64,000 nucleotides of DNA, from the NCBI GenBank assembly GCA_021613535.1, contig CP075492.1:13826001-13890000 (forward strand). Direction: 5' to 3'. The translations under genes were made by a program, and so were the position numbers. Every line of letters begins with the position of its first letter. Within the stretch, counting starts at the first letter, position 1. This document shows positions 11,305 through 17,551 of this stretch, one piece after another. The stretch is from Adineta vaga. Lineage: Eukaryota; Animalia; Rotifera. The notes under the pieces are model-generated. The model saw only the letters and a program-made list of their open reading frames with translations, ran no database searches and had not been told where the DNA came from.

Positions 11305-13221
11305 CTAATGCCAATATTTTCTGATATGTTCTGGATCAGTCATTCTAAACATTCAAATTTCGAAAGATATATAATGAAAGAAATCCTATACAAGAAGTTA
11401 TTCTCACTTATAGCAATGATTTCCATATCGACATTTTTCTTTCATGAAATCATCTGGATGTGAATATTTTCTCATGTGATCAGGTGCTTTACTAAAACAA
11501 AATAATATCTTTATTTAATCACATGTCTAAAAAGATATCCGATTTACTCGTAACATCCTTTTCCATATCGACATGGGATTTTTCTCGAAAGATCATGACG
11601 AGATTCTTCCGGATGAGAATATTTCTTTCGATGTTCAAAATCATGCCTAATTTTAAAAAAAGTTAATTATTTTTTCATTCAATTGAATCGAATTGATCAA
11701 TTACCTGAAACAATCAGATCCATAACGACATTTTGCCTTTTCGAACTGACTATTGCCCAAACCAATATGAAAATCGGAATCACCTGAATGTATAAATTCT
11801 CTGCGATGATCAGATTCAACACTTAAAAACAAAATTTTATTAAACGATATTCTTAATATTAAAATAGAAATACTTGTAACACTCTCGACCATATCTACAC
11901 GGACGACGTGAACCAACTATCGAATGAAATAAAACTTCATATTTATCTTTAACAAAATGACTAGAATACATACAGAGTGTTGTTGTTGCCATTGTTGTTG
12001 ATGATGATGATGAACTAGCAGAACGTGGAAGTTTACCTAAAAGAACGCAAATCGTAGTTTTTCGGTATATCTATCTTGAATAATCTTACTAAGTTCATGT
12101 CGAACATCATCGGATACTTTGAGATAGCATACATCATCGACCGAACAGAAGTTTTCATGGAATATTTTAACAATAGCACCAAGTGATGGATGTCCTTTCA
12201 TTTGTAAATAAGTTGATTTAGCACTGGCACGTTCATCAGGATTTTTCTTTAATAAAAGTTCAATAATTGCTTTATAACCACCTTCACGTGGAACGATAAT
12301 ATCTCTTGCATGAGGATTATTACAGAAACTATCATAATCAGCTTCATTTTTCCATGGAAATTTCTCGAAAAATAATACATAAAACATGACACCAGCTGCC
12401 CATGCATCTGATTTTTTATGAAGATGTCGGGACATAATATTACGCGAATTACGACGTAAGAATTCTGGCGAAGCAAAATAAACTGTATGAGCTTTATTGA
12501 CATCGACTGTAATTTGTGGAGATTTAGTGTTCATCTTTTCTACCGTTCCAAAATCGATTAATTTTACAAAAAAATGTTGTTGATGGCTTTGAACAATAAC
12601 CAAATTTTGTGGTTTTATATCACCATGAATAATATTTAGTTTCTCAAGAAAGATCAATGCACGTAGAACATAAACGATAATAATAATACCAAATAAAAAC
12701 TTTTGTTGTGCTTCTCGATGAGCAGCATTATTGAACCAGAATGTTAAGAGATCAGTTGCAGCTAATTCCATTGCAATACAGATATTTTCTTTTGTAAATT
12801 TACAACCATAATATTCAATAACAGGATGATTGTCTATATCAATACTTTTAATTAATCGTAAGAAATGAATTTCACTTTTGATTTCTTCTTGTATGCCGGG
12901 AATATTATTCATGATTTTGATTGCTACAATACGATTACGTCTTCGATCTTGCGCTTTATAAACTTGTCCAAAACCACCTCGATTAATAAATTGAATCAGT
13001 TGATATTGAACACCATCGATTTCAATTTGTTTCAAATCATTTGTTCCACCAGCTTTATTATCTACAGGAGTTTTTTGAAAATTTAATAATTTACCCATTT
13101 GTTCAATTGACGCTTCGTAATTTCTCTTATTATTTTGATGTTCTTTAGCGAAATGGTTTGCATGTTGAGCATTATGTATCATAATTGAATCTTGTTGATG
13201 ATCTGATGGTCCGGCTCCCAT
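11305..13221 (-). CDS. 525 aa non-RD Ser/Thr kinase with four C-terminal PBZ (zf-CCHH) fingers (exons 13221-12090, 12036-11974, 11916-11874, 11821-11705, 11646-11548, 11491-11408, 11344-11305)
   Basis: MGAGPS start; RGGFGQV, VAIK, HGDIKPQN, DFG, ASPE kinase motifs; six 52-63 nt GT-AG introns, all phase-consistent; four C-x5-C-x6/7-H-x5-H motifs each starting CRYG. Confidence 0.9.
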
Positions 13222-14112
13222 TTCTGACTCACTTCTTTCTATTGTAAATAAGTCGATATAAAAAAAGAAAAGCAACACACGTGTGCTCACGCAGAATACT
13301 ACTCAGGTAAAAATGTTTTTTTTTGAAAAGAAACAAAACGGTGTCTGTAAGATTTTTTTCTGTTATTGCATTTGTCGATGTCGCGGAAGAAAAAAATCCG
13401 CATACTTTAAACGTCATATTTACTAACGATGAAGGCAAGGAAACAAATTTTTTTTCGATGTGTAATGTATTTTTCGTTTCGCATTTTTGTAACACTATTA
13501 ATGCCTGTAGTTTTTCTACAAATGTTTTTTATTTTTTATCTTTTGAAATGGTTGTTTGCGCAATATATATGTATGTTACAGAAATGTGTCAATTAATTGG
13601 TTGTAATAAAATTGTATTTGTAACTGGAAAGAACTAGTTATTATACTATATCTGTATAGAATATGAGCATATTCTGCGAAACAAAGTCGAACAATTAGAA
13701 AGTATATGATTCATAATGAATCTCCAAATTTTTCGCTGCTTTGATAAATTCACACACTCTGTATCCGGGAATTATCATATAATCATACAGAACACGTTTT
13801 CGCTCAGAATTCAGCAGTAGAGTTTGACGGAAATTTTCTGTAGAATCTATGCAGCGACCAGGTGCTATTAAAACACATTTACCAATGGGTCGAGCATCCT
13901 ATCATCCATCGGCTAAATATATTTGCATCTCATTTTATATGTTCTACAACACTTTGGGTGATATACCTAAGCTCGATTTCAATCAATATTTTCAATATTG
14001 GCTGAACTGGAAACTATTTGATCCAAATGGAGTATCTTTGAAATTCATAAGGAATAATAAAGTGCGAAATGTATTGTTTATTGATTTAACAGAATTACGC
14101 GTAAAATTCTTC

Positions 14113-14203
14113 ATGAATAACAACATATATTAGTCAAACTGTGCATATCCACAATGTGCGGTTTTTATATACAGTTATCATTTGTTACATGTTGGTTATT
14201 CAT
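14113..14203 (-). promoter_or_regulatory. SECIS element (type II) in the 3' UTR of the deiodinase-like gene
   Basis: Minus strand: helix 1 augaauaaccaacaugu/auauguuguuauucau, core AUGAU...UGAC, helix 2 aacuguauau/auau(gc)acaguu, AAAAA bulge, mini-stem ccgca/ugugg; starts ~58 nt after the stop. Confidence 0.85.
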
Positions 14204-14260
14204 TTAGAAAATTCTTATGAAAGTCAATAAACAATGAAGCAAAAAAGGTGAGTAAATGTC

Positions 14261-15495
14261 TTAAGCAACTGGATTACGGATTTGAAAATAGTTTTCAATC
14301 CATTGATTGAGTTCATCGATATGATAACTAAAGGTTTCTTTATCAGGTTCAGCTTTCAAAGCTAATTTGCTATCGTAGATCACATAGAAACGAAATGGCC
14401 ATGATCCGTAAGTAAGATGAAATGTATTATCCATATTGTCAACTAACATTGGCATTTCAAATTTTAAATCATTTTTGCATTGTTGAGCATGAGCAATTCG
14501 TTGTTCGATTGTTGTTGGTTGATCGACACATGAAATCGTTCTACCTACTGGCCATTGATCACGAGCATGTGCTTCAGCAATGTAAATGGTCAAGAATTGC
14601 ATTCCAGCAGACGCATGCGAGCGAAAGAGCGCGCTAAACAAAGAAATCTTCTTTTATAATATCGTTGTGATAAAATAGGAAATACAAACTTCATTCCTCC
14701 AGCAGACGCCCGAAATGGAGGTCAGCTAGTCGAGCCAGCTAACAGTACCAATGGTTGACCAGCTGGAATATTTGAAAAAAGAGTTGTTGAAGAACCTTCT
14801 GACGTATATAAATCAATATCACGAATACATTCATTTTGTTGGACTAAACCTTGGGTGACTTTATTATGTTTTACTAAAAAATAAATATATCATAGGTAAA
14901 CATGAGCTATAATGACGTCGCAAAACGTACCATAAAAAGCTTCTTTTACTGCGGGTTCATCTGGAAAACGATAGAGAGCAGTACGCAATGCATTTACATC
15001 ATAGTATCCGAAATGTTCAACAACATACTGTTGAATTAAATTCAGAATGCAACTAAAATGTTCGAACAAAATCTCTCAACATTCTGACAGAATTGAATAC
15101 AATAAGACTTACGTAATCGCAGCTTCATCTTTATGATACGCATCGATGAGATCCTGAATTGATTCGGATAAACGAATACGTGTTTCATAAGCGATCATCT
15201 CGCGAACGGTCTCTATCGAAGGTAATTCATTCGATGTTTTAATCGTTTCAAAACCCATATGACCAGATGTAGGAAAAAACATTAAACATCGTGCTCTTGA
15301 AAACGAATCGTCATCTGAATCATCTAGGTTAGGTTTTGGTGGAGGTTTTTTTTGTTGTTTCGGTACTGGAGGAGCCGTTGCAGATGCAGCTTTATCATTG
15401 GCGATTGCTGCAGTCGTCTTTTCTGCAATGGTAGTTTTGTCTTGTTGATGGCTTTTGGATGCAGTGCCATCAGAAGACTTTTTACTATCGGCCAT
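14261..15495 (-). CDS. 353 aa iodothyronine deiodinase-like selenoprotein, Sec at codon 219 (TGA 14724-14722) (exons 15495-15113, 15052-14931, 14873-14690, 14633-14261)
   Basis: PLVLLAGSTS-U-PPF, FLTIYIAEAHARDQW and LVDNMDN..YGSWPFRFYVI match deiodinase motifs; introns of 60, 57 and 56 nt are in phase; SECIS downstream. Confidence 0.9.
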
Positions 15496-15856
15496 TCTAT
15501 CAATACTTCATCTGAATAAGGTATTTTAACACATGAAAAATGTATGCACGAGAATAAAACGAAGATTATATATACGAGTAGAACGTGTGATGTATTATTG
15601 CACCATCACGTCGTTATATATGTGAGTCATAATAAAATTTAGAGATGTAAAAGAAAATAGGAGAGATGTCGCTCATACTTTCGTTGACATATACGAAGAA
15701 AGACAATAGTTGACGTGGAGAATTGAAAAAAATGTAATCTTTATGAGATGCAAATAAAGAAGCATTCTCTTAAAAGTCTCGCGGAAAGAACGAAAAAAAC
15801 GGTAGTTGGAATTTTCATTGTCATATGTTTCAGAATATTTTCTTCGAGCATTTATT

Positions 15857-17551
15857 ATGCCTAGTAACAAAATGAACGTTGATCAACGTATTATACGTAT
15901 ATCAGACATTGCGGAAGAGTCTGGTGATTTTCTGATGCCTATTAGTGGTTACGAAGATATGCCACTTGTTCCTCTCGACATCGCCGTGGAACCATTGATA
16001 TCTTTGTTACCGATGATTCAAAGCTACGCTTATGCTGCAAAAGAACGTTGTAAGCATCCACCGCCGAACGGGCTGACTGTTGATGAATCCGCATCAATTA
16101 TGCTTTATTCAATGGGATGGGAACCACTTGATAAATGTCTTTATTATGCTTTGAATGCTACACTTCGTTCAGTTGAAAGAGGCAAGCTGAAACCATGGTT
16201 TTTGTACTTGAAGTTATTTTTTACTGCACTTTCACGGCTACCATCTAAACATCAATTTATTTTTCGTGGTGTAAAGCAAGATTTACACAGAGAATATCCA
16301 AAAAGTAAAAGCATCGTATGGTGGGGATTTTCATCATGCACTGTTTCAATTGACGTCTTACAGTCGGATCTTTTCTTGGGTAAAACGGGTATACGAACAA
16401 TGTTCACTATTGAATGTGAATCAGGCAAAGATATTCGAGAACATTCATACTTTTCATCTGAAGATGAAATTCTTCTTCTTGCTGGCACACAATTCAAAGT
16501 GATTGGTAATTTGGATCAAGGTAATGGTCTTCATACTATTCAATTGCAAGAAACTCAACCACCGTTTCCATTACGTCCACTTCTGACTACTGATTCTATT
16601 TCAAGTACGACGGTTTCTGGTAGTAATAAAAGTCTTTCTTTATTGACATTAAGCTTTTCAAAGAGATACCCATATAGTGATCAAACCACCATAGCAAAGT
16701 ATGACACCTGTAGTTGTGAATGAGCAGCGAAAAATTATCCTAACTATAAATTTGACCGATGTATCATTTTAAGGAGTAATTTTGAGTATGAGCTGAAAAG
16801 AGAAACTTCATTATTACGGTCACCTAATAATATTTCCAGCCAGATTCTCTCCATACATGCTCACATCCAGTTTTCATAGAACGAAACAATTTGGGAACCT
16901 TCTTGTATGCGTACACCGTTATATGCAACACTTTCAGAATAGCTGCTCACGTATATACCAAGGCCGCGCCACTTCTTTCTCCAGTTTTCACCTATACAAA
17001 CTGCCAAGTAGTTTCTCTATTCCTAAGTAACGACACTGATATCATAGTCCTATTAAGAAACAGCTTTAAACGAAGTAATTGCACGACTTTCCTACTAACC
17101 GGTTTGATCTGCTTTAAATCTCTTTCTTACTCACGGGTATCCCTTTAACACTACCAAAACTTTTTTCGAGTCATGCTGGTCTTTCTCCTCTTAAGGCAAA
17201 CCAGACCGCGATAACTATAAAAAGTCAATATTTTCAGATTCTACTCTCCATGGAATAAAATCAATTAATACGAATAATGCACCAAGTTCTCAATATTCAA
17301 TGCCTGGATATCAATCATATGATCAGAAACAACCTCAGAAAGCGAACGCTAAATCTTCTAAACTGTCTTCGGCAGGGAATGACTACGACGAAGAACTGAT
17401 ATCTGAATATTCAATGCCTAAATATCAATCATATGATCCGAAACCACCTCAGAAAGCGAACTCGAAATCTTTTAACCAACCAGAGACAACCCATACCTAC
17501 ACCCTCGAAGATCTCTTCGTTAACGATATCCAATCTATGATGATTGACTAG
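15857..17551 (+). CDS. R-S-E (NAD:arginine-type) ADP-ribosyltransferase with low-complexity tail (probable exons 15857-16619, 17238-17551)
   Basis: [33 protein letters not shown] motifs. A phase-1 splice to the 17300 ORF is in frame but inferred; unspliced, the ORF ends at 16723. Confidence 0.8.

Follow-up and report, generated by a model that had tools for sequence, protein, structure and literature searches.

Multi-copy families of selenocysteine (Sec)-containing deiodinases are already established in animals without a thyroid: 11 such genes were counted in Trichoplax, 4 in Lottia, 12 in Capitella and 9 in the amphioxus Branchiostoma, forming families that are partly clustered and were found solely by selenoprotein-aware searches (Jiang et al. 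2012, PMC3473315). The deiodinase mechanism itself has been described as peroxiredoxin-like (PMC11592359). The survey of Jiang et al. covered no rotifer (PMC3473315), and our literature search found no paper on deiodinase-like selenoproteins of bdelloids or on a bdelloid selenoproteome. Here, we analysed a 64,000-nt stretch of the genome of the bdelloid rotifer Adineta vaga (assembly GCA_021613535.1, contig CP075492.1, positions 13,826,001–13,890,000), hereafter the window, in whose coordinates all positions without a contig prefix are given, and we found that the gene at 14261–15495 on the minus strand is real, expressed, composed of four exons and codes for a deiodinase-family enzyme with a predicted Sec at its active site. 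Genes of this kind are already known in invertebrates and are routinely broken by predictors; in the window the gene takes a soluble, divergent form.

Reading of the reverse complement, checked by script, gave coding exons that sum to 1062 nt, which makes 353 codons followed by TAA. The sole internal stop was a TGA at codon 219 (14724–14722) in the context AGSTS-TGA-PPFRAS, and the exon 4 stretch 25 codons past this TGA is TIYIAEAHARDQW. A further in-frame TGA lies 5 codons 5′ of the ATG. An initial annotation, made from the letters of the window alone, had proposed a deiodinase-like gene of four exons and 353 codons with these motifs at 14261–15495; all of this proved correct, its coordinates coinciding exactly with the stop and start of the coding sequence (CDS). 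The gene comprises the following features, including an untranslated region (UTR) at either end and a selenocysteine insertion sequence (SECIS) element.

15496–15600, minus strand: 5′UTR, minimum extent, as the transcript contig of run X1 extends to 15600.
15495–15113, minus strand: exon 1 CDS, with the ATG at 15495; junction 15113/15052 present in 3 runs.
15112–15053, minus strand: intron 1, 60 nt, GT..AG; spliced out in contigs of X1, X5 and X8.
15052–14931, minus strand: exon 2; frame checked by script and transcript contigs.
14930–14874, minus strand: intron 2, 57 nt, GT..AG; spliced out in contigs of 4/4 runs.
14873–14690, minus strand: exon 3 (184 nt), carrying the active-site motif AGSTS-U-PPF; present in spliced contigs, e.g. 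X6 record 11.
14724–14722, minus strand: predicted Sec codon TGA (codon 219); the same in transcripts, in 9/9 paralogues and in Rotaria socialis.
14689–14634, minus strand: intron 3, 56 nt, GTTTGT..AG; spliced out in contigs of 4/4 runs.
14633–14261, minus strand: exon 4 CDS, with the TAA at 14263–14261, the C-terminal half of the thioredoxin-fold deiodinase domain; based on Pfam, PDB and the ratio of non-synonymous to synonymous substitution rates (dN/dS).
14260–14058, minus strand: 3′UTR, with AATAAA at 14082–14077 and transcript ends at 14058–14063.
14204–14109, minus strand: SECIS element, type 2, core 14191–14124, in the transcribed 3′UTR.
14181–14178, ~14166–14163 and 14135–14134, minus strand: the ATGA, apical AAAA and 3′ GA of the SECIS, from folding and alignment.

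All three splice junctions were reproduced by transcript contigs from four runs labelled "RNA?", each of a different study, that were aligned to 14050–15650. These contigs omit precisely 14634–14689, 14874–14930 and 15053–15112 and are therefore derived from spliced RNA; their overall span runs from 14058/14063 to 15600, with the AATAAA signal of the minus strand located 14–19 nt ahead of the contig ends. A single contig (X6 record 11) runs from the 3′UTR through exons 4, 3 and 2, and the contigs showed no difference from the window at 14722–14724, indicating that the TGA is present in the mRNA. For intron 1, a different acceptor at 15029/15028 was rejected because it breaks the frame and is absent from the transcripts. 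Contigs from several of the runs are interrupted or fork around the active-site codons (14700–14731), probably because this stretch is common to nine paralogues and confuses de Bruijn assembly, and one X1 contig with 10 mismatches resembles a paralogue or chimera.

A search of the window's genome (6 contigs, 100.8 Mb, ~31% GC) with exon 4 returned nine matching loci, L001 being the window copy. Exon 4 of L002–L005 was 58–72% identical to that of L001 and that of L006–L009 30–40% identical, and in exon 2 the window gene shared 62–79% identity with L002–L005. All nine loci, 25–72% identical in the downstream exon, carried TGA at the homologous codon of the upstream exon. Eight have it within AGS(T/I/M/Y)(S/T)-TGA-PP(F/L) and L009 within NFGSCT-TGA-PPF, and the residues around the TGA diverged among paralogues while the TGA codon itself stayed. 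The closest annotated relative, in the bdelloid Rotaria socialis (GCA_905331295.1, L026:2501–3999), has both the TGA, in the exon at L026:3410–3577 that reads AGSGS-TGA-PPFRAS, and a SECIS, at L026:4112–4208. Because the same codon is TGA in nine paralogues and in the Rotaria socialis relative, its in-frame occurrence is not due to chance, and the assignment of the UGA to the Sec position, which the initial annotation had made and for which it had suggested a comparison with orthologues, is borne out by both sets of genes.

The sequence past the UGA also bears the signature of a translated frame. Over exon 4, which lies entirely 3′ of the UGA, Nei-Gojobori dN/dS was computed for five paralogues plus the Rotaria gene and lay between 0.09 and 0.37 in 15/15 pairs. 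After the UGA, the window differed from the main transcript haplotype by 4 synonymous and 0 non-synonymous changes. Coding constraint downstream of the UGA, the loss of which the initial annotation had named as an argument against a selenoprotein, is thus retained.

Relatives of this gene are frequently incomplete in public data. Exon 4, used as the query of an exhaustive HMMER search, matched 1607 cluster representatives, and most of the best 150 of them were 100–135 residues long and began just past the UGA. The public Rotaria socialis model P0003 (295 aa) omits the Sec exon, fusing exons 2 and 4. The fragmentary relatives and this splice-out lend indirect support, as a general phenomenon, to the earlier statement that the gene is missed by open reading frame (ORF) calling.

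Two further observations concern the paralogues themselves. L009 (C5:4270486–4270770, minus strand) is the sole one of the nine with the vertebrate-type NFGSCT-TGA-PPF motif and a relay His, has a SECIS 27 nt after its stop, and is probably the canonical deiodinase orthologue of the rotifer. L006 (C3:4161743–4161979, plus strand) and L007 (C3:4181809–4182075, minus strand) are near-identical deiodinase-like Sec genes placed ~20 kb apart in inverted orientation, with identical exon-3 peptides and slightly different C-termini and SECIS elements, and look like a recent inverted duplication.

Folding of the window gene's 3′UTR gave a long hairpin (−25.8 kcal/mol, z −4.4) with the layout of a SECIS element, a feature absent from the initial annotation, namely an ATGA, an unpaired AAAA 11 nt on, a mini-stem and a GA. 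By pattern, covariance model and folding, a SECIS was found past the stop in all nine paralogues, about 30–110 nt downstream. In a seven-paralogue alignment of the element, the only invariant columns were the ATGA, one apical A and the GA, and compensatory changes were observed in 14/15 predicted pairs. A covariance model built from these seven paralogue elements was tested on sequences outside the seven, with the following scores.

L003 SECIS: 27.9 bits.
L008 SECIS: 18.8 bits, weak, in the expected place.
Rotaria socialis relative SECIS: 57.1 bits, E 9e-9.
Metagenome contig SECIS: 49.4 bits.

The elements of L003 and L008 had been overlooked by the pattern script, and both were found by the covariance model and by folding.

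The initial annotation had also argued that such a gene implies a working Sec machinery, and most of its parts were recovered from the genome. A tRNA-Sec gene was located at C2:2054217–2054302 with 66.7 bits (cut-off 47), which ARAGORN also called as tRNA-SeC with anticodon TCA; SepSecS was located on C5 at 14.01 Mb (E 3.8e-88); and selD/SPS was present at two loci. A PSTK-like gene on C5 at 12.97 Mb matched the archaeal PSTK model at E 1.5e-8, below that model's cut-off.

Membership in the deiodinase family, likewise claimed by the initial annotation, was confirmed by profile and structure searches, which were run exon by exon, with the joined exons used for codon counts and variant mapping and X placed at the UGA for local tblastn. 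Exon 4 alone matched Pfam PF00837 T4_deiodinase with 59.5 bits (cut-off 27, E 3.8e-16, profile positions 134–237) and, in the PDB, mouse Dio3 (4TR3, E 2.7e-8) and Dio2 (9H48, E 9e-8). Exons 1, 2 and 3 searched singly against Pfam gave nothing significant because the pieces are too short, with no match for exon 1 at E up to 1. Full-length relatives scored 97–101 bits with PF00837 versus 26.8–28.9 bits with the Redoxin and AhpC families.

The catalytic residues pointed in the same direction, as AGSTS-TGA-PPF satisfies the deiodinase motif G-S-x-(S/T)-Sec-P-P-F, and exon 4 residues Y17, E20, H22 and W27 of the (V/I)YI.EAH..D.W segment were invariant in an 11-sequence alignment. These four residues correspond to Dio2 Tyr157, Glu160, His162 and Trp167, which have been named as catalytic-network residues (PMC11592359). 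The Dio2 proton relay consists of Ser127, Thr129, Tyr157, Glu160, His162 and His182 (PMC11592359), and 5/6 of these were retained in the window gene (Ser, Ser-for-Thr, Tyr, Glu and His), leaving the network not complete. A Lys aligned with Dio3 Arg275 and a His with Dio3 His202. The domain contained no conserved Cys: that of "ISCV" is replaced by Ser in the Rotaria gene, and L002 lacks the one in exon 3.

The N-terminal part of the protein has an architecture of its own. Residues 1–65 are of low complexity and are followed, from about residue 67, by a conserved module of the form MFFP..G..F...RIRLS..IQ that runs on through exon 2, aligns to P0152 (E 1e-6) and P0161 (E 8e-5), and recurs in the full-length relatives P0151, P0152 and P0159 from metatranscriptomes and EukProt. 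No membrane anchor was detected, the maximum Kyte-Doolittle value in a 19-residue window being 0.33 in exon 1 and 0.33–0.86 across the exon pieces, and the 353-residue product is accordingly predicted to be soluble.

Several relatives (P0161, P0164, P0165, P0167, P0170 and P0173) carry an N-terminal F-box (PF00646/PF12937) before this module. In one such transcript, from a JGI metatranscriptome (3300030911, L034:82–1245), a single frame extends across ...LVAGSYT-TGA-PPF...VYIAEAH... into a full deiodinase-like domain after the F-box and MFHP...ELRLS. We know of no description of an architecture joining an F-box to a deiodinase-like selenoprotein. An F-box at the N-terminus of the window gene was considered and rejected because that of the relatives sits 5′ of the common module and exon 1 has no F-box match.

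Taking these observations together, the locus is a functional, transcribed and spliced bdelloid gene for a predicted soluble deiodinase-family protein, and we consider it highly likely that UGA219 and the SECIS specify Sec within a predicted deiodinase-type active site. Following established selenoprotein biology, the SECIS would recruit SBP2 and eEFSec with Sec-tRNA(Sec), so that UGA219 would be read as selenocysteine and not as a stop. Less certain is the catalysis, in which the selenolate of Sec219 would act as the nucleophile in G-S-T-S-U-P-P-F, backed by the Tyr, Glu, His and Trp of TIYIAEAH..D.W. It may attack an electrophile, the likeliest being, as family membership suggests, a halogen on a phenolic compound that carries iodine or bromine, and reductive dehalogenation would proceed through a selenenyl-halide (Se-I) intermediate. 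Since the domain has no conserved resolving Cys, the enzyme would be regenerated by an external thiol system. The window gene is one of eight divergent paralogues that share the MFxP...ELRLS module, the lack of a membrane anchor and a Gln-Pro in place of the relay His; with the canonical L009 standing separately in the same genome, a substrate other than the classical thyroid hormones seems quite possible.

Several points weigh against this reading. A Pro takes the place of the second His of the relay, which is His182 in Dio2 and, by our own reading of the 4TR3 alignment, His219 in Dio3; this position is Gln-Pro or Gln-Thr in 8/9 paralogues and His in L009 only. In addition, a Met occupies the position of Dio3 Cys239, and a Thr that of the proximal Cys, whose absence (GSTS-U) the initial annotation had rightly pointed out. 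Given these three substitutions, the vertebrate catalytic cycle is not transferable unchanged. The SECIS call is exposed on another side: when 221 nt were searched, SECIS_1 was the top Rfam match of the UTR, but its 18 bits (E 0.49) fall short of the gathering score of 35, and an Rfam scan of 12500–16000 returned no SECIS at E up to 10; the call therefore rests on covariation among the paralogues and on the purpose-built covariance model. Finally, a search with the bacterial selB model gave no firm eEFSec. Its top match (L031, C3:15663895–15664704) was mitochondrial EF-Tu, and two further matches were rejected as an EF1A-family GTPase and LepA/GUF1. One exon of a multi-exon GTPase (L037, C6:4905547–4906733) matches selB only, weakly (E 1.2e-6), making this gene the likeliest eEFSec candidate in the genome, if a weak one.

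We tentatively entertain a further reading, namely that the window gene and its seven closest paralogues are no thyroid-hormone-type deiodinases and belong to a distinct and widespread eukaryotic family of soluble Sec proteins, marked by MFxP...ELRLS, Gln-Pro, no resolving Cys and at times a fused F-box, which would act on another substrate or serve as a redox sensor, with L009 as the true iodothyronine-type enzyme. If so, dietary or microbial halophenols, or another electrophile, would be candidate substrates.

Somewhat doubtful, yet the strongest of the competing explanations, is that the gene encodes a real selenoprotein that is no dehalogenase, being instead a peroxiredoxin-like selenol peroxidase, a thiol-disulfide oxidoreductase or a redox sensor with a non-halogen substrate. 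Its standing derives from the missing relay His, here Pro, and from the soluble protein with no transmembrane helix. Full-length relatives, moreover, also pass the AhpC-TSA and Redoxin cut-offs, the resolving Cys is not conserved, the fusion of relatives to an F-box hints at a function in regulation or sensing for some eukaryotes, and L009 with its canonical GSCT-U-PPF could cover the true iodothyronine-type chemistry. Against such a role, the PF00837 score lies far above those of the peroxiredoxin families, the deiodinase-specific S-x-(S/T)-U-P-P-F and YI.EAH..D.W are invariant, and the Lys at Dio3 Arg275 and the His at His202 preserve the proposed substrate clamp.

The explanations that do without Sec fare far worse. 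Near-cognate read-through of the UGA as Trp, Cys or Arg is very improbable: the translation of P0009 has a W at this position owing to its code table, but read-through would leave without purpose both the conserved SECIS of every copy and a Sec pathway that looks complete, and the position is that of the family's catalytic Sec. Still less credible is a true stop, by which the locus would be a pseudogene or yield a truncated protein of 218 residues with exon 4 untranslated. It accords with the standard code and with the many database predictions that end or begin at the UGA, but not with an identical-codon TGA kept between diverged flanks in nine paralogues and another bdelloid family, the constraint on exon 4, a co-varying SECIS in every copy and the Sec machinery in the genome. 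Equally implausible is skipping of the Sec exon to give a mature protein that lacks the UGA and the active site, as drawn in public model P0003, since contigs of the four runs hold exon 3 with junctions 14873/14931 and 14633/14690, 0 of the contigs of these runs join exon 2 directly to exon 4 (14931 to 14633), and loss of the 184 nt would shift the frame in the window gene.

Three ORFs lie close to the gene. A divergent 305-codon ORF at 15806–16723 (plus strand), which begins ~200 nt past the 5′ end mapped for the deiodinase-like mRNA, matched NAD:arginine ADP-ribosyltransferase (ART, PF01129) at E 9.5e-11. A 94-codon ORF at 13849–14133 (plus strand) overlaps the 3′UTR and SECIS of the deiodinase gene on the opposite strand; its KTHLP motif is reminiscent of sulfotransferases, an assignment rejected as the ORF has no Pfam match, and it may be a relic or a chance ORF. 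At 12037–13290 (minus strand), a 417-codon ORF with an HGDIKPQN motif resembles a protein kinase and putatively encodes one.

The analysis sets right a gene that is cut short or wrongly spliced by standard predictors, an error that recurs in publicly available annotations of bdelloids and in database fragments numbering in the hundreds. It also documents, as far as genomic features can, the use of Sec by a bdelloid rotifer, with at least nine predicted deiodinase-family selenoprotein genes, and points to a soluble, anchor-less deiodinase-like subfamily in a thyroid-less animal. In doing so it bears on, without answering, what deiodinase-like enzymes did before thyroid signalling.

Like vertebrate DIO1–3 (solved structures 4TR3/4TR4 for mouse Dio3 and 9H48 for Dio2), the window gene combines a thioredoxin-fold catalytic domain with a predicted UGA-coded Sec in G-S-x-(S/T)-U-P-P-F and a SECIS in the 3′UTR. 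At the loop-D edge, (V/I)YI.EAH..D.W, it keeps Tyr, Glu, His and Trp, and a basic residue, Lys, stands at the place of Dio3 Arg275; the lack of the proximal Cys is shared with DIO2. Identity to the vertebrate deiodinases is ~30% over exon 4. Unlike DIO1–3, it has no N-terminal transmembrane anchor but begins with 65 low-complexity residues, followed by a soluble, conserved module of ~100 residues, and it departs from them in the Pro for the relay His (Dio3 His219/Dio2 His182) and the Met at the Dio3 Cys239 position.

Peroxiredoxin, AhpC-TSA and Redoxin proteins are of the same fold class, and relatives of the window gene weakly pass their Pfam cut-offs. By contrast with peroxiredoxins, for which these scores are far under that of PF00837, the gene has its predicted Sec in a deiodinase-type motif at the peroxidatic position and no conserved resolving Cys. 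As in the deiodinase families of Jiang et al. 2012 (PMC3473315), the Sec genes are multi-copy in a thyroid-less animal, with nine in the window's genome. There is also a likeness to an unnamed eukaryotic DIO-like subfamily from metatranscriptomes and EukProt (P0151, P0152, P0159 and P0161–P0173), with which the window gene has in common the N-terminal module MFHP..G..F ... NELRLS..IQ, the active-site segment YVKYNR...AGSYT-U-PPF and the segment YI.EAH..DEWP...QP, and from several members of which it differs in having no F-box.

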